Below the pieces are notes generated by a model. The model saw only the letters and a list, made by a program, of their open reading frames with translations, did not search any database and was not told where the DNA came from. A program made the position numbers and the translations under genes. From positions 20,708,001-20,772,000 of the forward strand of contig NC_043021.1 of the NCBI RefSeq assembly GCF_006345805.1: a DNA stretch of 64,000 nt, given 5' to 3'. The DNA comes from Octopus sinensis. Its lineage: Eukaryota. Positions 37,041 through 64,000 of the stretch are shown here, piece by piece. Each line of letters starts with the position of its first letter. Position 1 is the first letter of the stretch.

Positions 37041-37208
37041 CATACATACATATTCTCTTATTTGTTTCAGTCATTTGTGGCCACGCTGGAGCACCGCCTT
37101 TAGTGGAACAAATCTTTGTAAGTCCAGTGCTTATTCTATCGGTTTCTTTTGCTGAACCGCTAAATTACGAGGACATAAGCAAACGATGGTGGTTGGACAA
37201 ACAGAGAC

Positions 37209-37291
<83 letters not shown>

Positions 37292-39237: not shown

Positions 39238-39989
39238 CAATAATAATAAAGGGTAAAATTAATTAATTAACTCGTAATTAATAATTCCACCAAGTAGTAT
39301 ACGGCATGTTAAAAGGACCATTTTTCGGTAAACTTAAACAATATTTTTATAATTATAATTAGGGTTCAACAAAAATTTGCTTCACCAACATACCGAACTT
39401 TAGAAAAGAGCAGCCAAAGAACCTTAGCTATTTCTTCTACTATAAGAAAAAACTCCCGGACAACAAATACTCAAAACAACCACGTAGACAGAGGGGGAAA
39501 ATAACGAAATTCACTCGGTATTTGATTACCTGTGGACGCGTTTCGGAATTAGATCGGTATGAAGAATGTAAAATCATACTTCATCAAAACATTTTCCTCT
39601 TCAGCACAGAATTCCAAGATTTTAAATTTGAGAGCATTGAAAAAATTGAACATACCTATCCAATTCAAGTGATATCAGACACACTATATCCAATGACCAG
39701 CACCAACGAATTTGTCCCTCGTTCCACAGTCAGCCGGATTTTTTTTGTTGAAGTCATTCCCGGAGTTAACAAAACCCATGTCCCATGGAATGGATAAAAT
39801 TACTCACCGTTGAAGACCACATTTCGACCACGGGCCCTCCAGTCTTTTCTCGGCCGAGACGTTTGTCAGCAAAAGCGGGATTAGGACATACGTTACAGCT
39901 CGGAATTGTATGTCTTTCTTCCAGTAACTGAGTTGCTCCATTACTCATGGTCCCCAGGAAATCCCTATCTGACACCAGTTGTCCAATAT

Positions 39990-41747
39990 AGGTCATCAGT
40001 CCCCTTAGTTCCTCACCATGTACGAAGGCGTGCGTGACAGTTTCACTGACACGCCCGCACCTCGGGCATGCGGGTGGGGTACCAACGCCATGCCTTGACA
40101 ACCTCTCTCGAACTGACAAGGCTGATCGGTAGCACAAGCAAGCCAAGGATGTCTGGAAGTTGTCCAGATATCTCGGCCCGAATGTCCTTCCGAACAGGTT
40201 GACAAGCTGTTCCTCTTCGAAGCCTAGTCTACCCCAGGATGTCGTCGGACATATGCTCTACCAACCCGTAGTGGTAGCCCCGCTAACGGTATTGCTTGTT
40301 CGGGAGAACAGAGCGAGTGCATGTCTGCACTCCCTCTTCCATTCGCTCATTTTTGTTCTTCGCGTGATCCATGCGCCCACGTCCCGAGGGAACGTCAATT
40401 GTGGCAGGAAGAACTTGACATGCGGTGACTACACCCGTTCACCATCCAAGTAGAGCCAGATTTTTCTCAACCTCAGCGCATCATCAGCCAAGAAATCCCT
40501 AACCCACCCTTTAACGGTTTCTGGCAGCACATGAGGCGCCTCACAAGTGGTGGTTTCCCATTCCACAAAAAGCGGAAAAGGATCCATTCCAGCTTGGTCA
40601 GCCACTCTCCAGGGCAAGGCACATCGGTTAGGCGGTTGGTTATCACAGATGCTATAAACACCTGTGCAACCTCGACCCTCCCTAGCAAGGATAGCAACCT
40701 CCCAGATCAAGTCTGGGTTATGGCCGTCACCTTGCCTGTGACCTCGCTCCAGTTTTTCTCCATCTGGAGATCTGGTCCAAACCAGACTCCAAGCAATTTA
40801 ACCGGGCCCTCCGTCCAACGTCCCACGACGCTGTTGGGAGACATCGACTTGCCCCTCCGGGTGCCGAGTTGCAAGCCGACTGATACTTCCTAGTTAATTT
40901 TTGCTCCTGCCACCTCTTCGTATCTTTTGATGGCCTCTTCTACACGAGGTAGCTGCCCTTCATCAGACACGATGATGGTGACATCATCCGCATATGCCGT
41001 CACTCTCCTACCGTAACATAGATCACGCGGATCTCCCCGTGTGGCCTCCAATTTCCGCAGTAGTGGCTCAAGTGCCAATACATACAGAAGCGGGTGCAGC
41101 CCTGGCGAATTGAATGTTCGATCACGAACGGCTTCGAGAAGAAACCGTTTACCCGGACGATTGAATCGATGTCGCTATACATAGCATTGAACCAACTACG
41201 AAAAGTCGGGTCCAGTCCAACCGCCCTGAGGACTGCTCCCAGATACCGATGGTCAACCCTATCGAATGCCTTAGACTGGTCTAAATTCACCAGTGCCCTA
41301 CATTTGCCAGAAATTTTACCCACCCGCTCTATAGTGTCGTGTATGAGGTGAAGGTTGTCGTGTATTGTCCTGCCTGGGATGGCACATGTCTGTGCTTCTC
41401 CCACCAGGTCGCCCACTACAAGTCTCAATCTCTTGGCTAACAATTGGCCAAAATCTTTAACTCTGTGTTTAGCAGAGTTATGGGCCTAAAGTTATTAATG
41501 TCATTCCCATTGCACGAGTCCTTCCTGATCAGTGTCACTACTCCCCGGCTCACATATTTAGGGATTCTCCTGTTCTGCTAGCAGTTCGCATATACACCGG
41601 CCAGTATGTTCCCGAATAAGTTTGGCATACTCTTATAAAATTCGTAAGGAAGACCATCCAGTCCGGGCGACTTGTCCCCGGGGCACTCAGAAAGCACCTC
41701 TATGACCTCCACAAATGTGATCGGCCTTTCATAGCGCTCCGCCTTAC
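39990..41747 (-). pseudogene. Tx1/L1-clade LINE ORF2 fragment, copy A
   Basis: NFRPITLLN, LDQSKAFDRVDH, IRQGC, YADD, GGLG and the zf-RVT CPRCGRVSETVTHAF; frameshifted. Confidence 0.9.
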
Positions 41748-42505
41748 GGTCTCGACATCTCCCTGTGTTCTTCCCTACATTCGTCCCCTGTTCTTTGGTG
41801 CCAAACTATTTGCTCTTACCAAGCCCAATGGTGACTTCCGCCCCATAGCAATTGGTGGTACTCTGCGACAGGTGTGTCTGTCTTCAGTTTCTAAATGCCT
41901 GTCAGCCAAATTTTCTCCTACCCAGCTACGGGTGGGTACTAAGCTAGACTATGAGGCTGAAGCCCATGCCACTAGAGCTTTCACTAACTTGCCTTCTGAG
42001 TCCCCAAAGGTCATCCTTAAACTAGACTTCAAAAACGCCTTCAATTCCATCAGTTGGGATGTCATCTTCCGTGTAGTAAGGGAGACTGCTCAAAACCTCT
42101 ATCACTTTGCTTGGCAAGCTTATCGGGAGCCCTCCAACCTCGCCTTTGGTGACCACCTCATTCCACCTGTCTTTGAAGTCCAACAGGATGACCCACTTGA
42201 ACCATATTTATTATTATTGTCTTTTCTTATCATCAAATATTGATCTGTCGATGCTGGATTAGTGAATACAGGTGTGGGTGGGCAAATGTAGACATACAGT
42301 TGTTTGACCCTTCAGTATTCAGATTATTCTATCAAATGTAATATTTTCTTTTATTCATGTCGTTTTGAAGTTATCCTGAAATTAACAGGATGACCCACCC
42401 ACTTGGACCTTCTCTATTTGCCCTGGCTATTGACGATGTTATCAAGATGGGAGCTGACCTAGACTTGAATGTCTGGTATCTTGACAATGCCTGTTTGGGG
42501 GCTCC
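41748..42505 (+). pseudogene. CRE-like non-LTR RT fragment, copy A
   Basis: FFGAKLFALTKPNGDFRPIAIG...PTQLRVG...KLDFKNAFNS...QQDDPL / LGPSLFALAID...LNVWYLDN; interrupted by an insert with the TSD AACAGGATGACCCAC. Confidence 0.8.
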
Positions 42506-44099
42506 TGCATTGATATTTTTTTCTTTCTCCTTTTAGTTTTTGTAAAATACATTCCTTTTCATTGAATTATTTTAAATGATATCAGTTTATACAACAAAAT
42601 AAGAGACGGAAAATGGGATTTCACGAGAGTCTCTTCTCATATACATTTTTACGTATCTTTTTATAGTTTTTATAAACTTCTTTGAGAAGAAGTGTGTCTT
42701 TTCTATCAGTTCCTTAAGGGGACACTAGAATATTGCAACAACTAAGCAAAACGATGACTAAAAAACGAGGTACTTATTCAAGAAGTCACCTAAGGGGACA
42801 GACACAATCTACACCTGTGATGTAAGACAATTGACTGTACAGTATCTCGCCTGCAAGGTACAGGGATATATATGTATATATATATGTGTGTATGTATATA
42901 TGTATGTATATACATATACTACGTAATATATGTGTATGTATATATATATACACAAAGGCACATAAGCATTATTTATAGAAACATATTTCTGCATAGAATA
43001 TATTATATATTATATAGTATATTCTTATTTCTTTACTACCCACAAGGGGCTAAACATAGAGGGGGCAAACAAGGACAGACAAACGGATTAAGTCGATTAC
43101 ATCGACCCCAGTGCGTAACTGGTACTTAATTTATCGACCCCGAAAGGATGAAAGGCAAAGTCAACCACGGCGGAATTTGAACTCAGAATGTAACGGCAGA
43201 CGAAATACGGCTACGCATTTCGCCCGGCGTGCCAACGATTCTGCCAGCTCGCCGCCCTAATATATAGTATATTCCTGTGAGAGCTGACAACATAAACAGT
43301 GTTTCCATGCCCCTCGTTGTAAAACAGTAAAGTCTCAAAGATTGTTCTTTCGTCTTATTTCATGGTACGGCTGCATTAACGAACCCCTATCTCACATGTC
43401 TGTTCCGTGAAAAGAAAGGAAAACTGAAAACCATAAACAGAACGGATTTACTTTCACTTTCACTTAAATTTCCCCGAAAAGTATAATCGCGCGCGCATTT
43501 CTGTATGTAACGATTGTGGAGGTTTATAATAAAGAATCTCGTTAATTTCATTTTCTGTTTCTGCTCGCTCTATCCATCCACCAGTCCGCCGGATCCATCC
43601 AAGTCCTACCTGCCTACCTGTCTGTCTGTCTTATATGCATGCTTGTGTAATTATGTCAGCGATGCGTTTGTATGAATGTAAATGTACACACACACACACA
43701 CACGCCTCTCTTTTACTTGTTTCAGGTATTTGACTGCGGCCATTCTGGAGCACCGCCTTTAGTCGAGCAAATCGACGCCAGGACTTATTCGTTGTAAGCC
43801 TAGTACTTATTCTATCAGTGTCTTTTCCCGAACCGCTAATATACGGGGACGTAAACACAGCAGTATCGGTTGTCAAATGATGTTGGGGGAACAAACACAG
43901 ACACACAAACACATATATATCCATATACATATATGTCTTTCAGTTTCCGTCTACCAAATCCACTCACAAGGCTGTGGTCGGCCCGAGGCTATAGTAGAAG
44001 ATACTTGCCCAAGGTGCCACGCAGTGGCACTGAACCCGGAATTATGTGGTTAATAAGCAAGCTACTTACCACACAGCCACTCGTGCACCTGTATGTGTG

Positions 44100-44103
44100 T
44101 GTG

Positions 44104-44194
<91 letters not shown>

Positions 44195-44390
44195 TATATA
44201 TATATACATATATATACATATATATATACATAAATATACATAGACATATATATATACATACATATGTATATATATATATGTATATATATATGTATATATA
44301 TATGTATATATGTATGTATATATATGTATATATATGTGTGTATGTATGTATATACATACACTACGTAATATATGTGTATGTATATATATA
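44100..44390. repeat. Compound (TA)n/(TACA)n microsatellite
   Basis: Direct reading; source of the spurious YI-repeat ORFs. Confidence 0.95.
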
Positions 44391-44982
44391 CACACATAGG
44401 CACATAAGCATTATTTATAGAAACATATTTCTGCATTGTTCTTTCGTCTCTTTTCATGGTCAGGCTGCATTAACGAACTCCTATCTCACATATCTCTTCC
44501 GTGAAAAGAAAGGAAAACCCAAAACTTTAAATAGAACGGATTTACTTTCACTTTAATTTCCACGAAAAGCATAATCGCGCGCGCACTTCTGTATTTTATA
44601 CCCTGGCTATTTCAGATGACGCATTCGCTTCCTATCACCTCAAGTCGTCGCTTGCTAAACGCACTCGCAACTGAAATTATATACATTCACACATCTCAAC
44701 AAGCCTTCACTTCTACAATATTATATTTCAATCAATCACTTCGGATACTATGGAATATTAATTAAGACTTCTACACACTACGTTAATCGAATTCTATGCA
44801 TTAAGTATCGGCAATTCTCCTTGATTACGAACGATCCTTTCGATGTCATTTCTCGACTGAATTTAGAAATCCTGGAAATATACATACTGTGAGTAAACTT
44901 TCCACTCTAGAATTATTTTCAATAGCATCTACGGTATTTCTTTCCACCTGGTACGAAGACTATATATACACTCACAAACACA

Positions 44983-45372
44983 ATGAGCCTTAGACTCAGT
45001 CCAAGCGACATCCGCTATACTCAAGATTCAATTGCCTGTAAGTTCCGTAACGGGACAACATTGACAGAAACCATTTCAGATTTAGTCAAAGGTACAATCA
45101 CGCCTGACGGCATTCCTGTAATTTCGGTTTACCTAAAGGATGGGAAATACTACAGCACTGACAATAGGAGGCTATACGTTTTCAAAGAGCTGCAACGTCG
45201 GAGTCAACCAGACTTGAAGATAAGGGTTTACGTTACGTCGGCGGCACTATCACAATCGAAGTTCACGACGCTTAACGATGGCCAAAGTATAACAGTCCGA
45301 AGTGGATCAATAGGCTGGTTAAGCATGGATTTTGATGACTCAAGCACGGATTCTGATGACTTCTTCTTGTAG
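44983..45372 (+). CDS. Small intronless protein with a ParB/sulfiredoxin-like motif, copy A (129 aa)
   Basis: Intact, non-repetitive ORF; IRYTQDSI...IPVISV...YYSTDNRRLYVFK; acidic tail; present in all three units. Fold assignment is by motif recognition only. Confidence 0.75.
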   Translation: MSLRLSPSDIRYTQDSIACKFRNGTTLTETISDLVKGTITPDGIPVISVYLKDGKYYSTDNRRLYVFKELQRRSQPDLKIRVYVTSAALSQSKFTTLNDGQSITVRSGSIGWLSMDFDDSSTDSDDFFL

Positions 45373-45937
45373 AATTATGAATTTAAAAAAAATATTCCAT
45401 TGCTAAAAGAAAGAAAAAACAACAAAAACCAAAAAGCACGTTGCCGAATTTTACTGTTCCGAAAACAATCTATAAACTTCAAATTTACCCTCATGTCACC
45501 GACAGCATCTCTTCATTTAGAGAAGTGTCAAAAATCCAAAGTCTCTTGTATTTTATTTCAATAACCAACTCGCAAACCAAGTCATAATAATTGCCATTAT
45601 GCAAGGAACAAAACAAAACAAAACAAAAAACAATCTTTGCACGGAAAAAGTTAATTTGGGCGGTGTTTGGTTTCCGTAAGTAGTTTTAGTAAATCTTTAC
45701 TCCCTACTTTTAAAAACTGTAAATCTAAAAATGGCCGAAAGCGAAAACGTTGCCGAACGAGTGTGGGACAAAAATAAATAAACTAAATAAAAAATTTAAC
45801 CTTTGAAGGTATTTTTTTAATATGCTGGCCATTGATAAAATTTCTTTTCGTAAAAAATTTCATCCTATATTAGATGTATATATATATATTGTTAGCCACT
45901 ACACACATTTTTTTCTCTCCTTGTTTTTTCTGTGTAC

Positions 45938-45973
45938 CTTTCTGTAGAAGAGCGTAGGCTCGAAACGTAAAAG
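45938..45973 (+). ncRNA. Minimal hammerhead-like motif, unit A (also 52573-52608 and 62131-62166)
   Basis: CTTT-CTGTAGA-AGAGC GTAG GCTC-GAAACGTA-AAAG. Confidence 0.55.
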
Positions 45974-48184
45974 ACTTTTTCTATTTAACGGACTCTTCGT
46001 TTGCCGAACGACATGCACGAATGATTTGTTTATTGTTATCAAATTTTCGTGCCGCACATGAGCTCCCCCTCTTCAAATTGACTTTATCTGAACAGGCATA
46101 CGGTGTGCCACGCGTCAAGTATTGAAGTGATCGTAAAACATCGCGAGATAAAAGTGATTCAAGGTCCAAAATCGAAAATTCGAAATCTGAAGAACTTTCC
46201 ATTATGAACTAATTACATAATCTCCGCTCTATTCTTCTGTTGGGTTGCTAACTCGAGTTTCCGTTGTCAACAAATATTCACATTCTCTGTGTAATATTTA
46301 ATTTCTTTAATAGGGCGAGTGACGTCCTGTTCTGATTCCAACGCTATACCAATATCGAGGGGTCGCCAACCGTCCTCCCCGGCTGAAACTTAAAAAAAAA
46401 AAATGGAGCGGGTACGAAGAGGTTGAAAAAAAGTTTGGGCGTAACTTCGGTATATGTACCGGAAGTACCAGATACATTTCAAGAAAGTGTTGTTTTTTTT
46501 TATAAATATGGGATGTTAGGAGAAAAGGGTTTCTGTTATCTCCAGAAATGTAAACAAAGCCACTTCCGGTACCTATACCGAAGGATCGCCAAAGTTTGAA
46601 ACTATCTTAACCATATCTGTTTTTTCTTTTTGTATTTTTGATAGACTGTAAAAAACGGGGAAAAAATGTAACTCAAAAACCCAAAATAATCTTGGGTAAA
46701 CAAAAATTTGAAAAGAAGAAAAAAAGGTGGCATTCTTTTGTTTTTGTTTTCTTTTCTATCGCAAAGTCTGTTGTGCTAAAAACGGGATTTGAATATACAC
46801 ACACATGTAAGGGCGAAGGTAAAGCGAATGTACACACTACCTTTTTTTTTTTTTCAAAATTTTTTTTTTTAAATATCTGTTTACGATATTGAAGAATACG
46901 ATTTTGTCCCAAAACCACGCTTTCAAAGTTTTAATTTCTTCCACCCCAATTTCTCAATTATTAACTTTTTTTTTCGAATTCTTTTCAATCCATGTAGAAA
47001 AAGAGATTACGAATCTGGGATTTAAAAAAAAAAAATTTAATCCCTCCTCCCCCACCCATCACCTCCCCGCTTTCAAAAAGCTCAAAATTCCCTTGATGTT
47101 TCACGCATTCAAAAATATCAGACCATTACCAGAAAACCCGACATGCTAGAAACAGCAGCTAAACGACATTATTTCTGGAAAAACTTCCTCACTTTCTAAA
47201 AAGTTAAAAGTGAAACATTGGGAGTTTTTAGCCTTTTGAAAGTGGGGAGTTGATGGATATTTGAAGTTGGACAAGGAATTTGAGTGTTTCTTTCAAGAAA
47301 ATTTTTAAAAAAATTCTCAAAGATTCGTCATCTCTCTATATGTCTACGTGGATTACAAGAAGGAGAAAAAAATCCAGCGATTAACTCCTCGATTCTTTTG
47401 CGTGGGATCAGGTACCATGACCTCCTAAAAATGTTGCAAATCCCTTATTTTGGTTCGGAATCCTTCTCGGAATCATTGGAATTTTTTTTTTTTTTTTGTT
47501 TCGTTGAATGAATTCCTGTGACCTAATATGCTACAAAATCCTTTTTGGGGTCCGAAAAACGGGATGGGGTGAGGTGGAAGCCTCGGAAATTTCAACCCCC
47601 ACCCCCCATTGATTTTTTCACCCGCACGATTTTCACTAAGGAAAAAGAAAATAGTAATAAAAATCGGGCCCAAACTAATTTTTGCGTGTGTGTGTGTGTG
47701 TTGAGAAAGATGAACGATTTAAAACAAATATATCTTAATTGTTGTGTGAGAAAGTATATATATTCTGATGATAAAATATTGTATCTTTCAAAAGCATCCT
47801 AAATTTATAGACTACTAGCAGTATCTCCCGGCGTTGCTCGAGATTGTAAGGGAAATAACTATAAAGAATTTTTAGAGAGTTATAGCCAAAAAATAGCAAA
47901 AGATGCATTAAATTCCCCTTCATCAGCTGCCCCTGGTTCGACTCAATGCATGTTTCGAAGGTAAAGGCAGGGATACATATATACATATATACGACGGGCT
48001 TCTTTTAGTTTCTGTCTACCAAATCCACTCACAAGGCTTTGATCAGCCCGAGGCTATAGTAGAAGACACTTGCCCAAGGTGCCATGCAGTGGGACTGAAC
48101 CCAGAACCATGTGGATTGCCTAAATGCTGTCTATAAATAAACGCGAGAATAAAGTTCATCTTCATAGCGAATTCGAATTAAGGC

Positions 48185-48337
48185 TGTGGTGTGTGCGAGA
48201 GATTCGAATATAAAGGAACCTACCTTCTCTTCGATCTGATGGAGACCCTTCAGTGGTAACGGATCCTTCGACACAGCCCGACCCGAACGCTAGAGATAGC
48301 AGCTGCTTCGCCCAAACTTAGCAACGTCTTCACCCGT
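48185..48337 (-). repeat. Gypsy LTR fragment (matches 3628-3777)
   Basis: TGGTGTG.GCGAGAGATT...GAACGCTAGAGATAGCAGCTGCTTC...CACCCGT shared with the 5' LTR. Confidence 0.9.
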
Positions 48338-50285
48338 TTGTCAGCAAAAGCGGGATTAGGACATACGTTACAGCTCGGAATTGTATGTCTTTCTTCCAGT
48401 GACTGCGTCGCTCCATTACTCATTGTCCCCAGGAAATCCCTATCTGACACCAGTTGTTCAATATAGGTTATCAGTCCCCTTAGTTCCTCACAATGTACGA
48501 AGGCGTGCGTGACAGTTTCACTGACACGCCCGCACCTCGGGCATGTGGGTGGGGTACCAACGCCATGCCTGACAACCTCCCTCGAACTGACAAGGCTGAT
48601 CGGTAGCACAACTAGGCCAAGGATGTCTGGAAGTTGTCCAGATACTCGGCCCAAATGTTTTCCAAACAGGTTGACAAGCTGTTCCTCTTCGAAGCCTGTC
48701 ACCCCCAGGATGTCGTCGGACATATGCTCTACAACCCGTAGTGGTAGCCCCGCTGCCGGTATTGCTTGTTCGGGAGAACAGAGCGAGTGCATGTCTGCAC
48801 TCCCTCTGCCATTCGCTCATTTTTTGTTCTTCGCGTGATCCATGCGCCCACTTCCGAGGGAACGTCAATTGTGGAAGGAAGAACTTGACATGCGGTGACT
48901 ACACCCGTTCACCATCCAGGTAGAGCCAGTTTTCTCAACCTCAGCGCATCATCAGCCAAGAAATCCCTAACCCACCCTTTAACGGTTTCTGGCAGCACAT
49001 GAGGCGCCTCACAAGTGGTGGTTTCCCATTCCACAAAAAGCGGAAAAGGATCCGTTCCAGCTTGGTCAGCCACTCCCCAGGGCAAGGCACATCGGTTAGG
49101 CGGTTGGTTATAACAGATGCTATAAACACCTGTGCAACCTCGACCCTCCCTAGCAAGGACAGCAACCTCCCAGACCAAGTCTGGGTTATGGCCGTCACCT
49201 TGCCTGTGACCTCGCTCCAGTTTTTCTCCATCTGGAGATCTGGTCCAAACCAGACTCTAAGCAATTTAACCGGGCCCTCCGTCCAATGTCCCACGACGCT
49301 GTTGGGAGACATCGACTTGCCCCTACGGGTGCCGAGTTGCAAGCCGACTGAACTTCCTAGTTATTTTGCTCCTGCCACCTCTTCGTATTTTTTGATGGCC
49401 TCTTCTACACGAGGTAGCTGCCCTTCATCAGACACGATGATGGTGACATCATCCGCATATGCCGTCACTCTCCTACCGTAACATAGATCACGCGGATCTC
49501 CCCGCGTGGCCTCCAATTCCGCAGCAGTGGCTCAAGTGCCAATTAACAGAAGCGGAGGCAGGCCTGGCGAATTGAATGTTCGATCACGAACGGCTTCGAG
49601 AAGAAAAAACCGTTACCCGGACGATTGAATCGATGTCGCTATATACATAGCATTGAACCATCTACGAACAGTCGAGTCCAGTCCAACCGCCCTGAGGACT
49701 GCTCCCAGATACCGATGGTCAACCCTATCGAATCCTTAGACTGGTCTAAATTCACCAGTGCCCTACATTTGCCAGAAATTTTACCCACCCGCTCTATAGT
49801 GTCGTGTATGAGGTGAAGGTTGTCGTGTATTGTCCTGCTGGGATGGCACATGTCTGTGCTTCTCCCACCAGGTCGCCCACTACAGTCTCAATCTCTTGGC
49901 TAACAATTGGCCAAAATCTTTACTCTTGTGTTTAGCAGAGTTATGGGCCTAAAGTTATTAATGTCATTCCCCTGCTCGGGTCCTTCCTGATCAGTGTCAC
50001 TACTCCCCGGCTCACATATTAGGATTCTCCTGTTCTGCTACCATTCGCATATACACCGGCCAGTATGTTCCCGAACAAGTTTGGCATACTCTTATAAAAT
50101 TCGTAAGGAAGACCATCCAGTCCGGGTGACTTGTCCCCCGGGGCACTCAAGAAAGCACCTCTATGACCTCCACAAATGTGATCGCCTTTCATAGCGCTCC
50201 GCCTTACATGCCGAGAGACACGGGCCGCCGGCCAGGAAATCCCGATTGCATCTTTCCAGTGGGTTTCTGGTGCTGGGATCGATAG
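48338..50285 (-). pseudogene. Tx1/L1-clade LINE fragment, copy B
   Basis: Same motifs as copy A. Confidence 0.88.
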
Positions 50286-50651
50286 CTTACGGTCTCGACA
50301 TCTCCCTGTCAGCCGGTTGATGTTGGTCTTGAGCTCTTGGAGAACCTATCGCAGTTTATAAACTTGTTCTCGTGCGAGTGTGTCTTCCCTACATTCGTCC
50401 CCTGTTCTTGGGTGCAAACTATTTGCTCTTACCAAGCCCAATGGTGACTTCCGCCCCCATAGCAATTGGTGGTACTCTGTGACAGGTGTGTGTCTTCAAT
50501 TTCTAAATGCCTGTCAGCCAAATTTTCTCCTACCCAGCTACGGGTGGGTACTAAGCTAGACTATGAGGCTGAAGCCCATGCCACTAGAGCTTTCACTAAC
50601 TTGCCTTCTGAGTCCCCAAAGGTCATCCTTAAACTAGACTTCAAAAACGCC
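50286..50651 (+). pseudogene. CRE-like RT fragment, copy B (3' part deleted)
   Basis: Ends abruptly after KLDFKNA. Confidence 0.78.
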
Positions 50652-52024: not shown

Positions 52025-55000
52025 AAAAATATTCCATTGCTAAAAGAAAGAAAAAAACAACAAAATCCAAAAAGCACGTTGCCGAATTTTACTGTTCCGA
52101 AAAAACAATCTATAAACTTCAAATTTACCCTCATGTCACCGACAGCATCTCTTCATTTAGAGAAGTGTCAAAAATCCAAAGTCTCTTGTATTTTATTTCA
52201 ATAACCAACTCGCAAACCAAGTCATAATAATTGCCATTATGCAAGGAACAAAACAAAACAAAACAAAAACAATCTTTGCACGGAAAAAGTTAATTTGGGC
52301 GGTGTTTGGTTTCCGTAAGTAGTTTTAGTAAATCTTTACTCCCTACTTTTAAAAACTGTAAATCTAAAAATGGCCGAAAGCGAAAACGTTGCCGAACGAG
52401 TGTGGGACAAAATAAATAAACTAAATAAAAATTTAACCTTTGAAGGTATTTTTTTAATATGCTGGCCATGATAAAATTTCTTTTCGAAAAAATTTCATCC
52501 TATATTAGATGTATATATATATATTGTTAGCCACTACACACATTTTTTTCTCTCCTTGTTTTTTCTGTGTACCTTTCTGTAGAAGAGCGTAGGCTCGAAA
52601 CGTAAAAGACTTTTTCTATTTAACGGGACTCTTCGTTTGCCGAACGACATGCACGAATGATTGTTTATTGTTATCAAATGTTCGTGCCGCATATGAGCTC
52701 CCCCTCTTCAATTGACTTTATCTGAACAGGCACACGGTGTGCACGCGTCAAGTGTTGAAGTGATCGTCGAACATCGCGAGATAAAAGTGATTCAAGGACC
52801 AAAATCGAAAATTCGAAATCTGAAGAACTTCCATTATGAACTAATTACATAATCTCCGCTCTATTCTTCTGTGGGTTGCTAACTCGAGTTTCCGTGTCAA
52901 CAAATATTCACATTCTCTGTGTAATATTTAATTTCTTTAATAGGGCGAATGACGTCCTGTCCTGATTCCAACGCTATACCAATATCGAGGGGTCGCCAAC
53001 CGTCCTCCCCGGCTGAAACTTAAAAAAAAAATGGAGCGGGTACGAAGAGGTTGAATAAAAGTTGGGCGCGTAACTTCGGTATAGGTACCGGAAGTACCAG
53101 ATACATTTCAAGAAGTGTTGTTTTTTTTTTTAAATATGGGAGATGTTAGGAGAAAAGGGTTCTGTTATCTCCAGAAATGTAAACAAAGCCACTTCCGGTA
53201 CCTAAACCGAAGGATCGCCAAAGTTTGAAACTATCTTAACCATATCTGTTTTTTCTTTTGTATTTTTGATAGACTGTAAAAAACGGGGAAAAAATGTAAC
53301 TCAAAAACCCAAAATAATCTTGGGTAAATAAAAATTTGAAAAGAGAAGAAAAAAGGGTGCATTCTTTGTTTTTTGTTCTTTTCTATCGCAAAGTCTGTTG
53401 TGCTAAAAACGGGATTTGAATATATATATTATATATAATATACACACATGTAAGAGCGAAGGTAAGCGAATGTACACACTTTTTTTTTTTTTCAAAATTT
53501 TTTTTTTTTAATATCTGTTTACGATATTGAAGAATACGATTTTGTCCAAAAACCACGCTTTCAAAGTTTTAATTTCTTCCACCCCAATTTCTCAATTATT
53601 AACTTTGTTTTTCGAATTCTTTTTAATCCATGTAGAAAAACAGAGATTACGAATCTGGGATTTAAAAAAAAAAAATTTACCCCCTCCCCCACCCATCACC
53701 TCCCCGCTTTCAAAAAGCTCAAAATTCCCTTGATGTTTCACGCATTCAAAAATCTCAGACCATTACCAGAAAACCCGACATGCTAGAAACAGCAGCTAAC
53801 TAAACACATTATTCTGGAAAAACTTCCTCACTTTCTAAAAAGTTAAAAGTGAAACATTGGGAGTTTTTAGCCTTTTGAAAGTGGGGAGCTGATGGATATT
53901 GAAGTTGGACAAGGAATTTGAGTGTTTTTTTCAAGAAAATTAAAAAAAAAATTCTCAAAGATTCGTAATCTCTCTATATATGTCTACGTGGATTACAAGA
54001 AAGAGAAAAAAATCCAGCGATTAACTCCTCGATTCTTTTGCGTGGGATCAGGTACCATGACCTCCTAATATGCTGCAAATCCCTTATTTTGGTTCGGAAG
54101 AAGAGGGGGACTCCCCGCTTCTCGGAATCATTGGAATTTTTTTTTTTGTTTCGTTGAATGAATTCCTGTGACCTAATATGCTACAAAACCCTTTTTGGGG
54201 TCCGAAAAACGGGGTGGGGTGAGGTGGAAGCCTCGGAAATTTCAACCCCTACCCCCAATTGATCTTTTTACCCGCACGATTTTCACTAAGGAAAAAGAAA
54301 ATAGTAATAAAAATCGGGCCCAAACTAATTTTTGCGTGTGTGTGTGTTGAGAAAGATGAACGATTTAAAACAAATATATCTTAATTGTTGTGTGAGAAAA
54401 TATATATATTCTGATGATAAAATATTGTATCTTTCAAGAGCATCCTAAATTTATAGACTACTAGCAGTATCTCCCGGCTTTGCTCGGGTTTGTAAGGGAA
54501 ATAACTATAAAGAATTTTTAGAGAGTTATAGCAAAAAAATAGCAAAAAATGCATTAAATTCCCCTTCATCAGCTGCCCCTGGTTCGACTCAATGCGTGTT
54601 TCGAAGGTAAAGGCAGGTATATATATATACATATATACGACGGGCTTCTTTTAGTTTCCGTCTACCAAATCCACTCACAAGGCTTTGATCAGCCCGAGGC
54701 TATAGTAGAAGACACTTGCCCAAGGTGCCACGCCGTGGGACTGAACCCAGAACCATGTGGTTGGTAAGCAAGCTACTTACCACACAGCCATTCCTGATGC
54801 AAAAAAAAAATACACACATGACAACACTCACTCTCTCTCTCTCTCTCACCTCCAATTCATATACATCTTTCACTTTCTGCTCTCACTCCAAGGCAAATGC
54901 CGCTGTATATATCGTGCACACACACACAGGCCAAGCGATACGGACCAAGTCTAGATACACATACACAGGCTGACAAGTATTTACTTTCATTTTCGGTTGT

Positions 55001-56089
55001 TGCCGTTCGGCTTTTCCTGCTTACTCACCGCTTTACATTTACACAATGAATTTCATACACACACACACACACACACACACACTCCCATTGACTTTTATGT
55101 CTATGAGTTGAATAGTGAAACACACTGTATGTGTGTGTGTGTGTGTGTGTGTGAATACAAATATATTAAGTGGAACACGCTCGCACGTGTACCTGCTATC
55201 TTCCATGTATACGTACATCAGTGGTTTTCAACCAGGGTTCCGCCAGTACAGTCCAGGGGTTGCGCAAGAAGTTACAAAAATGCTAAAATCGACAGTAATT
55301 TTTAATTCTCCTGTGCAGATATGTGTGCATATAAGACAATTAAATTGTTGCACAGGGGTTCCTCGAGCCAGTGGAACGTTTCCTTGTGGTTCCGCTCCAG
55401 CAAAAAGGTTGAAAAGCACTGCTCTATACATACATAAATACATCGTGCGAGTGTTTCACTATTCATGAAAGTCAATGGGTCCATGTGTGTCTGTCTTTAT
55501 GACTGTGTTTGTTTCAACCCGACCGCTTGACAACCCATTTTCTTTACTACCCCCACAAGGGGCTAAACACAGAGGAGACAAAGAAGGACAGGCGGATTAA
55601 GTCGATTATATCGACCCAGTGCGTGACCGGTACTTAATTTATCGCTGGCAGAACCGTTAGCACGCCGGGCAAAATACTTAGCGTAATTTCGTCTGTCTAC
55701 ATGTTCTGAGTTCAAATTCTGCCGAGGTCGACTTTGCCTTTCATCCTTTCGGGGTCGATAAATTAAGTACCAGTTACGCACTGGGGTCGATGTAATCGAC
55801 TCGATCTGTTGGTCTGTCTTTCTTTGTTCCCTCTATGTTTAGCCCCTTGTGGGTAAATAAAGAAATAGGTACTTAATTTATCCACATCGAAAAGATGAAA
55901 GGGAAAGTCAACCTCGGCATCATCACCTCATTTTACATGTCTCTGTAAATTTTGGAGTCAATCCGACGGGATCTAGTGGCCTTTAACCCGTTCTCAATGC
56001 CAAAATCAGACGGAAAAACAAACAAACAAATTTTTCGCATTTCAGTTATATAAATAGAGGAGATATTTATATATATATATATATATATA

Positions 56090-56268
56090 TAGGGAGAGTT
56101 TACGAAAAAAAACAAAAGACGAAGACAGGTGGTGTACAAAACAAACAGATGTATTAGTATAACGCTCAGGAATAGGAAAAGTCTTTTACGTTTCGAGCCT
56201 ACGCTCTTCTACAGAAAGAGACACAGAAAAAACAAGGAGAGAAAAAAATGTGTGTAGTGGCTAACGAT
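56090..56268 (-). mobile_element. Penelope-type element with a hammerhead-like motif (56182-56219)
   Basis: Reverse complement of the 18085 family with a TCTTT/AAAGA stem I; abuts (TA)n. Confidence 0.65.
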
Positions 56269-56465
56269 CAATCATGGCGGAAACCACAAATTAACCAACA
56301 CATCGATTGGACCACGTTTATAGCTTATTTTTTAAAACAAAGCACGACATGAGAAAATAGGTGATGTAACATATCTTACGGCTGTTTCTGATCGGATTGC
56401 CTAAATGCTGTCTATAAATAAACGCGAGAATAAAGTTCATCTTCATAGCGAATTCGAATTAAGGC

Positions 56466-56617
56466 TGTGGTGTGTGCGAGAGATTCGAAATAAAGGAACC
56501 TACCTTCTCTTCGATCTGATGGAGACCCTTCAGTGGTAACAGATCCTTTGACACAGCCCGACCCGAACGCTAGAGACAGCAGCTGCTTCGCTCAAACTTA
56601 GCAACGTGTTCACCCGT
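56466..56617 (-). repeat. Gypsy LTR fragment (matches 3628-3777)
   Basis: Same as the 48185 fragment. Confidence 0.9.
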
Positions 56618-58570
56618 TTGTCAGCAAAAGCGGGATTAGGACATACGTTACAGCTCGGAATTGTATGTCTTTCTTCCAGTGACTGAGTTGCTCCATTACT
56701 CATGGTCCCCAGGAAATCCCTATCTGACACCAGTTGTCCGATATAGGTTATCAGTCCCCTTAGTTCCTCACAATGTACGAAGGCGTGCGTGACAGTTTCA
56801 CTGACACGCCCGCACCTCGGGCATGTGGGTGGGGTACCAACGCCATGCCTTGACAACCTCCCTCGAACTGACAAGGCTGATCGGTAGCACAACTAGGCCA
56901 AGGATGTCTGGAAGTTGTCCAGATACCTCGGCCCGAATGTCCTTCCGAACAGGTTGACAAGCTGTTCCTCTTCGAAGCCTAGTCTCCCCCAGGATGTCGT
57001 CGGACATATGCTCTACCAACCCGTAGTGGTAGCCCCGCTGCCGGTATTGCTTGTTCGGGAGAACAGAGCGAGTGCATGTCTGCACTCCCTCTGCCATTCG
57101 CTCATTTTTGTTCTCCGCGTGATCCATGCGCCCACGTCCCGAGGGAACGTCAATTGTGGAAGGAAGAACTTGACATGCGGTGACTACAGACGTTCACCAT
57201 CCAGGTAGAGCCAGTTTTCTCAACCTCAGCGCATCATCAGCCAAGGCATCCCTAACCCACCCTTTAACGGTTTCTGGCAGCACATGAGGCGCCTCACAAG
57301 TGGTGGTTTCCCATTCCACAAAAAGCGGAAAAGGATCCGTTCCAGCTTGGTCAGCCACTCCCCAGGGCAGGGCACATCGGTTAGGCAGTTGGTTATCACA
57401 GATGCTATAAACACCTGTGCAACCTCGGCCCTCCCTAGCAAGGATAGCAACCTCCCAGATCAAGTCTGGGTTATGGCCGTCACCTTGCCTGTGACCTCGC
57501 TCCAGTTTTTCTCCATCTGGAGATGTGGTCCAAACCAGACTCCAAGCAATTTAACCGTCCAACGTCCCACGAAGCTGTTTGGAGACATCGACTTGCCCCT
57601 ACGGGTGGCGAGGTGCAAGCCGACTGATACTTCCTAGTTAATTTTTGCTCCTGCCACCTCTCCGTATCTTTTGATGGCCTCTTCTACACGAGGTAGCTGC
57701 CTTTCATCAGACACGATGATGGTGACATCATCCGCATATCCCGTCACTCTCCTACCGTAACATAGATCACGCCGATCTCCCCGCGTGGCCTCCAAATTCC
57801 GCAGCAGTGGCTCAAATGCCAATACATACAGAAGCGGAGGCAGGCCTGGCGAATTGAACGTTCGATCACGAACGGCTTCGAGAAGAAACCGTTTACCCGG
57901 ACGATTGAATCGATGTCGCTATACATAGCATTGAACCATCTACGAACAGTCGAGTCCAGTCCAACCGCCCTGAGGACTGCTCCCAGATACCGATGGTCAA
58001 CCCTATCGAATGCCTTAGACTGGTCTAAATTCACCAGTGCCCTACATTTGCCAGAAATTTTACCCACCCGCTCTATAGTGTCGTGTATGAGGTGAAGGTT
58101 GTCGTGTATTGTCCTGCCTGGGATGGCACATGTCTGTGCTTCTACCACCAGGTCGCCCACTACAAGTCTCAATCTCTTGGCTAACACTTGGCCAAAATCT
58201 TTAACTCTGTGTTTAGCAGAATTATCGGCCTAAAGTTATTAATGTCATTCCCCTTGCTCGGGTCCTTCCTGATCAGTGTCACTACTCCCCGGCTCACATA
58301 TTTAGGGATTCTCCTGTTCTGCTAGCAGTTCGCATATACACCGGCCAGTATGTTCCCGAACAAGTTTGGCATACTCTTATAAAATTCGTAAGGAAGATCA
58401 TCCAGTCCGAGCGACTTGTCCCCGGGGCACTCAGAAAGCACCTCTATGACCTCCACAAATGTGATCGGCCTTTCATAGCGCTCCGCCTTACATGCCGAGA
58501 GACACGGGCCGCCGGCCAGGAAATCCCGATTGCATCTTTTCCAGTGGGTTTCTGGTGCTGGGATCGATAG
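56618..58570 (-). pseudogene. Tx1/L1-clade LINE fragment, copy C
   Basis: ORFs 57744-58187, 57634-57822 (YADD), 57226-57450 and 56530-56892 (zf-RVT). Confidence 0.9.
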
Positions 58571-59790
58571 CTTACGGTCTCGACATCTCCCTGTCAGCCG
58601 GTGATGCTGGTCTTGAGCTCTTGGAGAACCTATCGCAGTTTATAAACTTGTTCTCGTGCGAGTGTGTTCTTCCCTACATTCGTCCCCTGTTCTTTGGTGC
58701 CAAACTATTTGCTCTTACCAAGCCCAATGGTGACTTCCGCCCCATAGCAATTGGTGGTACTCTGCGACAGGTGTGTCTGTCTTCAATTTCTAAATGCCTG
58801 TCAGCCAAATTTTCTCCTACCCAGCTACGGGTGGGTACTAAGCTAGACTATGAGGCTGAAGCCCATGCCACTAGAGCTTTTACTAACTTGCCTTCTGAGT
58901 CCCCAAAGGTCATCCTTAAACTAGACTTCAAAAACGCCTTCAATTCCATCAGTTGGGATGTCATCTTCCGTGTAGTAAGGGAGACTGCTCAAAACCTCTA
59001 TCACTTTGCTTGGCAAGCTTATCGGGAGCCCTCCAACCTCGCCTTTGGTGACCACCTCATCCCACCTGTCTTTGAAGTCCAACAGGATGACCCACTTGAA
59101 CCATATTTATTATTATTGTCTTTTTTTTATCATCAAACTAGCAGTATCGCCCGGCGTTGCTCGGGTTTGTAAGGGAAATAACTATATAAGCATTTTTAGA
59201 GAGTTATAACAAAAAAATGCATTAAAAATGGAAAAAAATGATGGTGAATTTTTTTTTAATCGTTGACTCATCGTAGACATTTTTAGAGAGTTACTTCCCT
59301 TATATATTAGCGAAAAAAATGCATTAAAATGGAAAAAAATGATGGTAAATTTTTTTTTAATCGTAGACTCATCGTAGACGCGCGCTAATACCCAGAAGGC
59401 CTCGATATGAATCACGACTATAAGATACCCGGTTTTGGTTAAACTGCACCGCAAAATGTGGGAGTAGTTAGGAATATAAATCGTAGGAGACAGACACACA
59501 ACCTCTCTTTTATATATAAAGATATTGATCTGTCAAAGATATTGATTAGTGAATACAGGGGTGGGTGGGCAAATGCAGACATACAGTTGTTTGACCCTTC
59601 AGTATTCAGATTATTCTATCAAATGTAATATTTTCTTTTATTCATGTCGTTTTGAAGTTATCCTGAAATTAACAGGATGACCCACCCACTTGGACCTTCT
59701 CTATTTGCCCTGGCTATTGACGATGTTATCAAGATGGGAGCTGACCTAGACTTGAATGTCTGGTATCTTGACAATGCTTGTTTGGGGGCT
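58571..59790 (+). pseudogene. CRE-like RT fragment, copy C (longest), with nested inserts
   Basis: ORF 58492-59172: DISLSAGDAGLELLENLSQFINL...GAKLFALTKPNGDFRPIAIG...LDFKNAFNS; WYLDN motif near 59760. Confidence 0.82.
59138..59522 (-). mobile_element. Non-autonomous Helitron, 385 bp, present only in unit C
   Basis: Minus strand A|TC...CCCGAGCAACGCCGGG hairpin...CTAG|T; empty AT site in unit A near 42237. Truncated 3' ends at ~47813 and ~54461. Confidence 0.92.
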
Positions 59791-61170
59791 CCTGCATTGA
59801 TATTTTTTTCTTTCTCCTTTTAGTTTTTGTAAAATACATTCCTTTTCATTGAATTATTTTAAATGATATCAGTTTATACAACAAAATAAGAGACGGAAAA
59901 TGGGATTTCACGAGAGTCTCTTCTCATATACATTTTTACGTATCTTTTTATAGTTTTTATAAACTTCTTTGAGAGGAAGTGTCTCTTTTCTATCAGTTCC
60001 TTAAGGGGACACTAGAATATTGCAACAACTAAGCAAAACGATGACTAAAAAACGAGGTACTTATTCAAGAAGTCACCTAAGGGGACAGACACAATCTACA
60101 CCTGTGATGTAAGACAATTGACTGTACAGTATCTCGCCTGCAAGGTACAGGGATATATATGTATATATATATGTGTGTATGTATATATGTATGTATATAC
60201 ATATACTACGTAATATATGTGTATGTATATATATACACACAAAGGCACATAAGCATTATTTATAGAAACATATTTCTGCATAGAATATATATATATTATA
60301 TAGTATATTCCTTATTCTTTACTACCCACAAGGGGCTAAACATAGAGGGGGCAAACAAGGACAGACAAACGGATTAAGTCGATTACATTGACCCCAGTGC
60401 GTAACTGGTACTTAATTATCGACCCCGAAAGGATGAAAGGCAAAGTCAACCACGGCGGAATTTGAACTCAGAATGTAACGGCAGACGAAATACGGCTACG
60501 CATTTCGCCCGGCGTGCCAACGATTCTGCCAGCTCGCCGCCCTAATATATAGTATATTCCTGTGAGAGCTGACACCATAAACAGTGTTTCCATGCCTCTC
60601 GTTGTAAAACAGTAAAGTCTCAAAGATTGTTCTTTCGTCTCTTTTCATGGTACGGCTGCATTAACGAACTCCTATCTCACATGTCTGTTCCGTGAAAAGA
60701 AAGGAAAAACCGAAAACTATAAACAGAACGAATTTACTTTCACTTTAATTTCCACGAAAAGCATAATCGCGCGCGCACGTCTGTATTTTATATCCTGGCT
60801 ATTTCAGATGACGCATTCGCTTCCTATCACCTCAAGTCGTCGCTTGCTAAACGCACTCGCAACTGAAATTATATACATTCACAACATCTCAAGCCTTCAC
60901 TTCTACAATATTATATTTCAATCAATCACTTCGGATACTATGAATATTAATTAAGACTTCTACACACTACGTTAATCGAATTCTATGCATTAAGTATCGG
61001 CAATTTTCCTTGATTACGAACGATCCTTTCGATGTCATTTCTCGACTGAATTAGAAATCCTGGAAATATACATACTGTGAGTAAACTTTCCACTCTTGAA
61101 TTATTTTCAATAGCATCTACGGTATTTCTTTCCACCTGGTACGAAGACTATATATACACTCACAAACACA

Positions 61171-61581
61171 ATGAGCCTTAGACTCAGTCCAAGCGACATC
61201 CGCTATACTCAAGATTCAATTGCCTGTAAGTTCCGTAACGGGACAACATTGACAGAAACCATTTCAGATTTAGTCAAAGGTACAATCACGCCTGACGGCA
61301 TTCCTGTAATTTCGGTTTACCTAAAGGATGGGAAATACTACAGCACTGACAATAGGAGGCTATACGTTTTCAAAGAGCTGCAAAGTCGGAGTCAACCAGA
61401 CTTGAAGATAAGGGTTCACGTTACGTCGGCGGCACTACCACCATCGAAGTTCACGACGCTTAACGATGGCCAAAGTATAAAAGTCCGAGGACCATCATCA
61501 AACAACCGGTTAAGCATGGATTTTGATGACTTATACATGGATTTTGATGACTTATACATGGATTCCGATGATGAATTTTAA
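61171..61581 (+). CDS. ParB/Srx-like small protein, copy C (136 aa)
   Basis: Intact ORF; first 71 codons identical to copy A; tail contains a 21-nt tandem repeat (MDFDDLY x2). Confidence 0.75.
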   Translation: MSLRLSPSDIRYTQDSIACKFRNGTTLTETISDLVKGTITPDGIPVISVYLKDGKYYSTDNRRLYVFKELQSRSQPDLKIRVHVTSAALPPSKFTTLNDGQSIKVRGPSSNNRLSMDFDDLYMDFDDLYMDSDDEF

Positions 61582-64000
61582 AAAAATATTCCATTGCTAA
61601 AAGAAAGAAAAAAACAACAAAATCCAAAAAGCACGTTGCCGAATTTTACTGTTCCGAAAACAATCTATAAACTTCAAATTTACCCTCATGTCACCGACAG
61701 CATCTCTTCATTTAGAGAAGTGTCAAAAATCCAAAGTCTCTTGTATTTTATTTCAATAACCAACTCGCAAACCAAGTCATAATAATTGCCATTATGCAAG
61801 GAACAAAACAAAACAAAACAAAAAACAATCTTTGCGGAAAAAGTTAATTTGGGCGGTGTTTGGTTTCCGTAAGTAGTTTTAGTAAATCTTTACTCCCTAC
61901 TTTTAAAAACTGTAAATCTAAAAATGGCCGAAAGCGAAAACGTTGCCGAACGAGTGTGGGACAAAATAAATAAACTAAATAAAAAATTTAACCTTTGAAG
62001 TATTTTTTTAATATGCTGGCCATTGATAAAATTTCTTTTCGTAAAAAATTTCATCCTATATTAGATGTATATATATATATATTGTTAGCCACTACACACA
62101 TTTTTTTCTCTCCTTGTTTTTTCTGTGTACCTTTCTGTAGAAGAGCGTAGGCTCGAAACGTAAAAGACTTTTTCTATTTAACGGACTCTTCGTTTGCCGA
62201 ACGACATGCACGAATGATTTGTTTATTGTTATCAAATGTTCGTGCCGCATATGAGCTCCCCCTCTTCAAATTGACTTTATCTGAACAGGCACACGGTGTG
62301 CCACGCGTCAAGTGTTGAAGTGATCGTCGAACATCGCGAGATAAAAGTGATTCAAGGACCAAAATCGAAAATTCGAAATCTGAAGAACTTTCCATTATGA
62401 ACTAATTACATAATCTCCGCTCTATTCTTCTGTTGGGTTGCTAACTCGAGTTTCCGTTGTCAACAAATATTCACATTCTCTGTGTAATATTTAATTTCTT
62501 TAATAGGGCGAATGACGTCCTGTCCTGATTCCAACGCTATACCAATATCGAGGGGTCGCCAACCGTCCTCCCCGGCTGAAACTTAAAAAAAAAAATGGAG
62601 CGGGTACGAAGAGGTTGAATAAAAGTTTGGGCGTAACTTCGGTATAGGTACCGGAAGTACCAGATACATTTCAAGAAGTGTTGTTTTTTTTTATAAATAT
62701 GGGATGTTAGGAGAAAAGGGTTTCTGTTATCTCCAGAAATGTAAACAAAGCCACTTCCGGTACCTAAACCGAAGGATCGCCAAAGTTTGAAACTATCTTA
62801 ACCATATCTGTTTTTTCTTTTTGTATTTTTGATAGACTGTAAAAAACGGGGAAAAAATGTAACTCAAAAACCCAAAATAATCTTGGGTAAATAAAAATTT
62901 GAAAAGAAGAAAAAAAGGTGGCATTCTTTTGTTTTTGTTTTCTTTTCTATCGCAAAGTCTGTTGTGCTAAAAACGGGATTTGATATATATTATATATATA
63001 TATACACACATGTAAGAGCGAAGGTAAAGCGAATGTACACACTTTTTTTTTTTTTTCAAAATTTTTTTTTTTTAATATCTGTTTACGATATTGAAGAATA
63101 CGATTTTGTCCAAAAACCACGCTTTCAAAGTTTAATTTCTTAATTCTTCCACCCCAATTTCTCAATTATTAACTTTGTTTTCGAATTCTTTTTAATCCAT
63201 GTAGAAAAACAGAGATTACGAATCTGGGATTTAAAAAAAAAAAATTTAATCCCCCCTCCCCCACCCATCACCTCCCCGCTTTCAAAAAGCTCAAAATTCC
63301 CTTGATGTTTCACGCATTCAAAAATCTCAGACCATTACCAGAAAACCCGACATGCTAGAAACAGCAGCTAAACGACATTATTTCTGGAAAAACTTCCTCA
63401 CTTTCTAAAAAGTTAAAAGTGAAACATTGGGAGTTTTTAGCCTTTTGAAAGTGGGGAGCTGATGGATATTTGAAGTTGGACAAGGAATTTGAGTGTTTTT
63501 TCAAGAAAATTAAAAAAAAAATTCTCAAAGATTCGTAATCTCTCTATATGTCTACGTGGATTACAAGAAAGAGAAAAAAATCCAGCGATTAACTCCTCGA
63601 TTCTTTTGCGTGGGATCAGGTACCATGACCTCCTAATATGCTGCAAATCCCTTATTTTGGTTCGGAAGAAGAGGGGGACTCCCCGCTTCTCGGAATCATT
63701 GGAATTTTTTTTTTTGTTTCGTTGAATGAATTCCTGTGACCTAATATGCTACAAAACCCTTGTTGGGGTCCGAAAAACGGGGTGGGGTGAGGTGGAAGCC
63801 TCGGATATTTCAACCCCTACCCCCAATTGATCTTTTTACCCGCACGATTTTCACTAAGGAAAAAGAAAATAGTAATAAAAATCGGGCCAAACTAATTAAT
63901 TTTTGCGTGTGTGTGTGTTGAGAAAGATGAACGATTTAAAATAAATATATCTTAATTGTTGTGTGAGAAAGATATATTCTGATGATAAAATATTGTATCT

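Follow-up and report, generated by a model that had tools for sequence, protein, structure and literature searches.

Proteins of the ParB/sulfiredoxin (Srx) fold bind nucleoside triphosphates through an arginine motif, sulfiredoxin using ATP and ParB using CTP. The described system closest to the gene reported here is Tox-ParBL1, which was defined by a predicted ParB fold, an N-terminal Ser/Thr that is not found in classical ParB, and the motif [NT][RT][RT], mostly N-R-R (PMC3482391). Metazoans were already listed among its carriers in that study by Zhang, de Souza, Anantharaman, Iyer and Aravind in 2012, in which ParBL1 in eukaryotes was treated as an acquisition separate from sulfiredoxin (PMC3482391). 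A second such system is ToxB, which serves rare CdiA toxins as a ParB-CTPase-fold warhead, binds and hydrolyses ATP and is toxic in plant cells too; its ATPase activity and toxicity depend on a Box II arginine (preprint 10.64898/2026.05.05.722872). ParBL1 received its name in 2012, when it was described as a toxin domain of bacterial origin acquired by eukaryotes, and its animal members have so far been neither named nor assayed, nor are they covered by a Pfam model or a structure. In this paper, we describe a ParBL1-type gene in a 64,000-nt stretch of the Octopus sinensis genome (RefSeq assembly GCF_006345805.1, contig NC_043021.1, positions 20,708,001 to 20,772,000 of the forward strand; hereafter the window), where it is carried by a tandem array of five units. 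The whole is best explained as a recent tandem segmental duplication with a ParBL1-type gene, a reading to which we give a probability of about three in four, and the gene adds a new, uncharacterised member to a family known from computation.

Self-comparison of the window revealed head-to-tail units that start exactly at positions 39860, 48335 and 56615:

39860..48334, plus strand: unit A, the leftmost, truncated at the array edge
48335..56614, plus strand: unit B, recombinant
56615..64000, plus strand: unit C, the fullest unit, extending 2172 bp beyond the window to a full length of 9558 bp

The end of the window and its right flank were followed in a second sequence, L001 (CM016883.1 of GCA_006345805.1), which reproduces window 51171-64000 exactly in its first 12,830 bases and adds 26 kb to the right of the window; coordinates above 64000 are L001 positions plus 51170. 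Two further units, D and E, start in this flank at 66173 and 75389, and the array as assembled thus comprises five units, with periods of 8475 bp (A to B), 8280 bp (B to C), 9558 bp (C to D) and 9216 bp (D to E). Unit E is collinear with the others as far as 81386, where an interruption of ~3 kb follows, beyond which there are rearranged pieces only. Exactly five gene copies were found by tblastn, which detected no sixth copy in the 8.6 kb after the fifth, and no N gaps were found in the array sequence. The original prediction, made from the window, had described three collinear units with a B to C period of about 8.28 kb; the collinearity and the period are confirmed, while the count rises to five through the check that it had itself proposed, namely extending the sequence to the right. 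In the five-way unit alignment, substitution divergence ranges from 0.3% (D-E) to 2.7% (A-B), and BLAST identity with gaps counted is 95-97%, lower than the substitution-only identity mainly because of the gaps. The array is therefore young, as had been proposed, since the units differ by 0.3-2.7% while the orthologous protein of Octopus bimaculoides is only 76% identical.

The units are joined by one and the same junction, which is formed by the following piece:

48113..48334 and again 56394-56614, plus strand: 222-bp junction piece at the unit end, whose right edge is the duplication breakpoint of the array

The right edge of this piece abuts the truncated long interspersed nuclear element (LINE) of the following unit. 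About 150 bp of it are 90% identical to window 3628-3777, a region 38-187 nt ahead of the gag open reading frame (ORF) of a minus-strand long terminal repeat (LTR) retrotransposon whose other LTR is beyond the window. The same junction between the LTR-related piece and the truncated LINE is present in B, C, D and E, but the sequence that flanks A on the left, at 39860, bears no relation to the junction piece. An identical junction in B to E with none left of A points to one founding duplication, the junction of which was then copied. The sharing of an LTR junction by B and C had been noted before; the 222-bp piece is indeed common to both, and to D and E as well, but LTR and leader sequence are indistinguishable here. 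We also considered the piece to be the 3' end of a LINE, as a minus-strand ORF crosses it, and rejected this candidate because of its match to the region upstream of the gag of the LTR retrotransposon.

The substitutions in the alignment add a second line of evidence. The alignment holds 53 parsimony-informative sites, of which 19 support a pairing of B and C, 18 of D and E, and 13 of A and B. Relative to C-coordinate 60750, all 13 AB/CDE sites are on the left and 16 of the 19 BC/ADE sites on the right (Fisher p = 3e-6; 2e-4 with a dense patch collapsed to one event). As the AB and BC patterns are incompatible with one tree and are spatially apart, unit B is a recombinant: it is A-like on the left and C-like in the gene region, and the switch point is located ~400 bp upstream of the gene, within the block of which A has a second copy. 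This pattern directly supports unequal crossing-over or gene conversion. A tree of the form (A,((B,C),(D,E))) would explain all the large indels without recombination, and is rejected by the 13 left-confined AB/CDE sites. The separated site patterns and the junction shared from B to E are in line with the mosaic history of recurrent unequal crossing-over that had been put forward for the locus. The array may thus have been founded when a block of ~8-10 kb was duplicated once, a block that would have held a dead LINE, a second reverse transcriptase (RT) fragment, small non-autonomous elements, the gene, an AT-rich tail, and part of an LTR element. This step would have made the new junction, by placing the LTR-derived piece next to the truncated LINE, and growth to five units would have proceeded by unequal crossing-over of misaligned units, with unit B as a visible exchange product.

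The ORF of the array gene has no intron, and the gene copies in the window, together with a repeat inside the coding sequence (CDS), are as follows:

44983..45372, plus strand: gene copy A, intact ORF of 129 aa
51617..52024, plus strand: gene copy B, frame-broken as assembled, with two small deletions and stops between them
61171..61581, plus strand: gene copy C, intact ORF of 136 aa, with the domain in residues 1-108 followed by a disordered acidic tail
61515..61571 (C) and 51958-52014 (B), plus strand: 21-bp coding tandem repeat, 2.7 copies, encoding the MDFDDLY repeats of the acidic tail

This 129/136-aa gene, at 44983-45372 in A and 61171-61581 in C, is the sole ORF of the unit without a transposon signature. 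It had been called the only intact ORF unrelated to transposons, which holds in that no other ORF lacks such a signature, but not for copy B with its broken frame. The frame breaks in B, D and E consist solely of 1-2-bp deletions; apart from deletions and one substitution (codon 55) the CDS of copy B equals that of copy C, and the CDSs of copies D and E are identical to each other, deletions aside. The acidic tail of A, D and E differs from that of the B/C type. Copies A and C retain every residue that is invariant in the family, and O. bimaculoides has an intact orthologue.

Copies B (51617-52024) and E (L001 28412-28819) carry paired deletions near the same sites, nt ~41 and ~165, and each pair totals 3 bp, which would be unlikely for independent random errors. 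The region upstream of the ATG of copy C (61060-61170) has a TATA-like box at -22 and, ~70-110 nt upstream of the ATG, a possible mini-intron of ~40 nt (GTGAGT...CAATAG), and AATAAA signals are found ~400 bp past the stop codon. A paralogue, LOC118767837, is located on the same chromosome of O. sinensis.

Scans of the protein with Pfam, NCBIfam and PADLOC returned nothing above noise, and sequence and profile searches of the PDB gave chance hits only (e.g. levansucrase) and no Srx, so that the link to a fold rests on a predicted structure. The AlphaFold model, built from 56 sequences, has a mean predicted local distance difference test score (pLDDT) of 85, exceeds 90 over residues 1-100 and is confident over 1-108. 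The top 18 Foldseek matches in the PDB, with probabilities of 0.85-1.0, are all proteins of the ParB/Srx fold, including Noc, ParB with CTP or CDP, Atu1540, Arabidopsis sulfiredoxin, SbnI and 1vk1, in agreement with the earlier description of the gene as ParB/Srx-like. The protein is ~130 aa long, cytosolic-looking and without a signal peptide, and its tail beyond residue 108 is disordered in the model, acidic, built in part from the 21-bp repeat and variable by copy type. N61, R62 and R63 are invariant in the family alignments A2, A3 and A5, and R63 is kept in at least 90% of the sequences of alignment A4; S16, in the motif IRYTQDSI, is invariant in A2 and the majority residue in A4 and A5, and Q14 is conserved. 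In the model, the invariant D60-N61-R62-R63 caps helix 61-73, which follows a beta-hairpin. On our reading of the model, D-N-R-R would occupy the position of the GERR motif of ParB, and IRYTQDS (Q14, S16) that of ParB Box I.

An exhaustive profile search collected 3608 representative homologues, which are of two kinds. The first kind comprises bacterial proteins in which the domain is C-terminal to PT-HINT, RHS, filamentous-haemagglutinin, PT-VENN or PT-TG modules; in a scan of 50 homologues of the C-terminal type, PT-HINT was found in 12 and RHS, Fil_haemagg, DUF637, PT-VENN and PT-TG in one or two each. In addition, an orphan cassette (P0003) has a small ORF 3 bp downstream, like toxin-immunity pairs. 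This layout is that of polymorphic toxins. The second kind comprises small animal proteins, stand-alone or multi-domain, in which the domain is N-terminal; all are labelled uncharacterised. They come from bivalves (Mya, Tegillarca, Mytilus, Ostrea, Magallana, Pecten, Dreissena and others), tunicates (Styela, Clavelina), an annelid and other octopus loci, and are often clustered. A neighbour-joining tree of 260 domain segments left the octopus clade unresolved between other animal sequences and bacterial toxins. By its fold, its motifs and the architecture of its homologues, the gene is a probable member of Tox-ParBL1, the type protein of which is NGK_2271 of Neisseria gonorrhoeae.

A CaaX-like C-terminal box (CCVIL, CTIL, CIIM) is present in the animal paralogues P0005, P0007, P0008, P0012, P0079, P0138 and P0139, among which are sequences of Octopus vulgaris, O. 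sinensis and O. bimaculoides; such ends suggest prenylation and membrane anchoring in these other branches. The array copies have in its place an acidic tail with F/Y-x-x-L motifs.

Given the fold and the arginines, and the absence of a DNA-binding or dimerisation domain, the most likely activity of the protein is nucleotide binding with hydrolysis or phosphotransfer. The domain would bind a nucleoside triphosphate and then hydrolyse it or transfer a phosphate, using the D-N-R-R helix cap and IRYTQDS. Lineage-specific clusters and variable tails suggest a fast-evolving effector in conflict or immunity as the most likely role. The family is under constraint in other genomes: a metagenome contig from ENA (L003; 1.33 Mb, 38% GC, eukaryotic-looking) has two members at 1670-2104 and 10001-10381. 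These lie 8.3 kb apart in the same orientation, can be aligned solely across the CDS, where they are 88% identical in nucleotides, and have a ratio of nonsynonymous to synonymous divergence (dN/dS) of 0.31. Several other contigs carry 3-5 paralogues, according to the protein tables. In our main reading, this domain, the C-terminal warhead of the bacterial toxins, has been taken up by several animal lineages. In a wider scenario, the array would be a recently expanding and diversifying family of a domesticated toxin domain, which octopus and, more widely, molluscs, tunicates and annelids would employ as a nucleotide-consuming innate-immune effector, or else a selfish toxin-type element, with copy number and acidic tail under selection. 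We regard this wider scenario as quite unlikely.

The remaining sequence of the units includes retroelement debris, as had been recognised, with LINE-type RT and zf-RVT fragments in addition to the piece that matches an LTR retrotransposon. In unit C the order is the minus-strand LINE ORF2, the plus-strand RT fragment, a Helitron, a microsatellite and the ~240-bp repeat, the gene, the AT-rich tail, the spacer and the 222-bp piece:

39860..41747 (A), 48335-50207 (B) and 56615-58491 (C), minus strand: decayed LINE-type ORF2 fragment (RVT_1, zf-RVT), which opens each unit
58492..59137 (C), 41764-42237 (A) and 50378-50651 (B), plus strand: second RT fragment, in the opposite orientation to the LINE
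59138..59522 (C), minus strand: non-autonomous Helitron of 385 bp with the ends 5'-TC...CTAG-3'
60305..60557 (C), 43019-43272 (A) and 50750-51007 (B), plus strand: ~240-bp dispersed repeat that precedes the gene, resembling a short interspersed nuclear element (SINE) or a miniature inverted-repeat transposable element
43507..44434, plus strand: A-specific insertion in which the upstream block occurs a second time, along with a dispersed repeat (43706-44123) and a (TA)n run (44104-44390)
47815..47842 (A) and 54461-54488 (B), minus strand: 3' terminus left by an older member of the same Helitron family, found in each unit's tail
54764..56393 (B), plus strand: 1.63-kb spacer in the unit tail, present in B, C and D and absent from A

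The units differ from one another in their large indels. Relative to every other unit, A has deletions of ~84 and ~71 bp at 41748-41763. It also has an insertion of ~1.09 kb at 43507-44434, which re-duplicates a ~160-bp upstream block (43341-43506 matches 44435-44594), and it is without both the Helitron and the 1.63-kb spacer. Unit B has a deletion at 50651/50653 that amounts to 880 bp relative to A (A 42040-42919) and ~1.23 kb relative to C. These observations reproduce the two microdeletions and the promoter-block duplication that had been ascribed to A and the ~880-bp deletion ascribed to B; the Helitron that had been described as private to C is real as a 385-bp element, but D and E carry the same one. 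A 346-bp block that contains the ~240-bp repeat is absent from D and E.

On its minus strand the 385-bp Helitron reads 5'-TCTTTATA...CTGCTAG-3'. It was inserted between A and T without a target-site duplication, and the empty site is kept in unit A at 42237/42238. Its 3' hairpin is weak, with a short CCCG/CGGG stem (-4.5 kcal/mol, z = -0.59 against shuffled sequences). The 28-mer of the Helitron terminus, allowing up to two mismatches, has 4 hits in the window and 7 in L001 against 0 expected, and four of these 11 hits lie in the overlap of the two sequences. Downstream of the gene, ~2.7 kb of AT-rich sequence ends in the older, second Helitron terminus. To the left of the array there are a terminus 28-mer at 36361-36388 (plus strand) and, just beside the array, a Pif1 2B-domain helicase fragment at 37606-38001 (minus strand, E = 3e-18); the stretch 36361-38001 is the remnant of an autonomous Helitron that adjoins the array.

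The LTR retrotransposon to which the junction piece is related occupies the left end of the window, and accounts for the 54% GC of its first 4 kb:

1-3800, minus strand: internal part of the LTR retrotransposon, running off the left end of the window, with gag, protease, RT/RNase H and integrase-like ORFs
2832-3590, minus strand: gag with a zinc knuckle
2332-2895, minus strand: aspartyl protease
1018-2295, minus strand: RT/RNase H
295-678, minus strand: integrase-like ORF

Two dispersed repeat families are scattered through the window. Copies of the first, of ~210-250 bp, are also found at 4104-4315, 21930-22170, 25740-25975, 32619-32827, 38420-38675 and 55644-55871, in both orientations and with 87-94% identity among copies; tRNA and Rfam scans of the window were empty, so that the repeat lacks the match that would type it as a tRNA-derived SINE. 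The second, of ~400 bp, occurs at 5864-6246, 6410-6817, 13819-14203, 27351-27758, 29286-29585, 43706-44123 and 54619-54796, with one copy within the A-specific insertion and another in the tail of unit B.

Several observations weigh against a recent duplication with a ParBL1-type gene as the best explanation, and some of them are what favours its rivals. To begin with, no structure that sequence searches detect has been solved for the subfamily. Furthermore, no immunity-like partner was found in the unit, the other ORFs of which gave no hit in a Pfam scan and include no homologue of the ORF downstream of P0003. The only annotated model of the array gene, LOC118767871 in RefSeq (P0001; 151 aa, 18.8 kb, L001 10001-28819), is a chimera of C, D and E, with residues 1-116 from unit C and tail peptides from D and E. 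The copy number is that of the assembly, and D and E, only 0.3% apart, could be an over-expansion by the assembly. As regards the gene, the frame is open in two of the five copies as assembled (A and C) and broken in the other three. The domain substitutions within the array number 10, of which 9 are nonsynonymous and 1 synonymous, and dN between A and C is 0.021 with a dS of 0. The exact A and C proteins are absent from all other public protein sets. By a rough binomial estimate the 9:1 ratio is indistinguishable from neutrality; the array copies may be drifting, the counts being too small to tell.

The last of these observations, namely the broken frames, the preponderance of nonsynonymous changes and the absence of the A and C proteins from other datasets, together with the position of the locus in a transposon graveyard, are the grounds for regarding the array as a real but decaying neutral duplication, whose gene copies are dead or dying and functionless in O. 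sinensis. We consider this possible, though unlikely. Copies A and C have full-length frames with all the family-invariant residues, the orthologue of O. bimaculoides is intact, and the family is under purifying selection elsewhere. The broken frames, moreover, fall in units with an excess of small indels. In unit B, private indels of 1-3 bp outnumber private substitutions by 62 to 48, in unit A there are 4 such indels and 49 substitutions, and D and E differ by 31 such indels and 18 substitutions. The excess has the look of long-read consensus error that persisted in a multi-copy region, and the frame breaks in B, D and E may be consensus errors.

The same excess can be turned against the array itself, as a sign of a poor consensus and of an assembly that inflated a single copy or a smaller array by placing haplotypes or error-laden long reads next to one another without collapsing them. 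D and E are 99.7% identical in substitutions, and the coincident pairs of CDS indels in B and E point in the same direction. Such an artefact is nevertheless improbable. The sequence is gap-free, the divergence among A, B and C (1.6-2.7%) is clearly above that between D and E (0.3%), and related genes are clustered in other genomes as well. The large differences among the units, namely the 385-bp Helitron, the 346-bp block, the 1.63-kb spacer, the 0.88/1.23-kb deletion and the 1.09-kb insertion, are not allelic noise within a single unit. In practical terms, the RefSeq model at this locus is chimeric, and indel errors seem to abound in the local consensus.

Helitrons capture genes, but that the array gene was amplified by transposition or transduction as cargo of a Helitron or another element is very improbable in spite of the two Helitron-family termini in each full unit and the Pif1-helicase remnant on the left, because the units follow a strict head-to-tail order with one common junction and collinear flanks, the 385-bp Helitron, bounded by the empty site of A, excludes the gene, the terminus in the tail points away from it, and no unit is bracketed by Helitron ends.

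A tandem segmental duplication with a ParBL1-type gene is thus the reading in which we compare the locus with known systems. As in Tox-ParBL1, the octopus protein has a predicted ParB fold, an N-terminal Ser (S16) and an N-R-R motif, and its bacterial homologues are C-terminal to HINT, RHS and filamentous-haemagglutinin modules. Unlike the bacterial Tox-ParBL1 proteins, it is free-standing, with an N-terminal domain, an acidic tail and no delivery module; no immunity gene (Imm-SUKH or Imm44) was detected by the octopus gene, a feature that defines bacterial systems only, and unlike those toxins the gene sits in a young five-unit tandem array. The protein resembles ToxB in having a ParB-fold domain without DNA-binding or dimerisation domains, and an arginine-rich phosphate-binding motif at a helix start. 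ToxB, however, was found via PF02195, for which the octopus protein has no match, and the latter represents a separate, more divergent branch. In contrast to classical ParB, which combines PF02195 with a helix-turn-helix and a dimerisation domain, the octopus protein, of 129-136 aa, consists of a single domain followed by a disordered tail. Like sulfiredoxin, it is a small single-domain ParB-fold protein, and Arabidopsis Srx (6ky4) is among its best matches, with a template modelling score (TM-score) of 0.57 on the target; unlike sulfiredoxin, it shows no sequence match, the catalytic Cys motif of Srx is absent, and there is no Cys near the NRR.

The array itself is like ordinary tandem clusters in transposon-rich genomes, with a shared junction, recombinant units and a mixture of intact and broken frames, and the cargo gene alone is special. 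The mechanism of duplication is therefore ordinary, and the interest of the locus lies in its cargo, a member of a family of which thousands of representatives and many lineage-specific clusters were found in marine invertebrates. The five-copy array, with its two types of sequence, its variable tail and an orthologue in a close outgroup, offers a tractable entry into this family, and could reveal whether animals use a nucleotide-binding toxin fold in immunity or genetic conflict.

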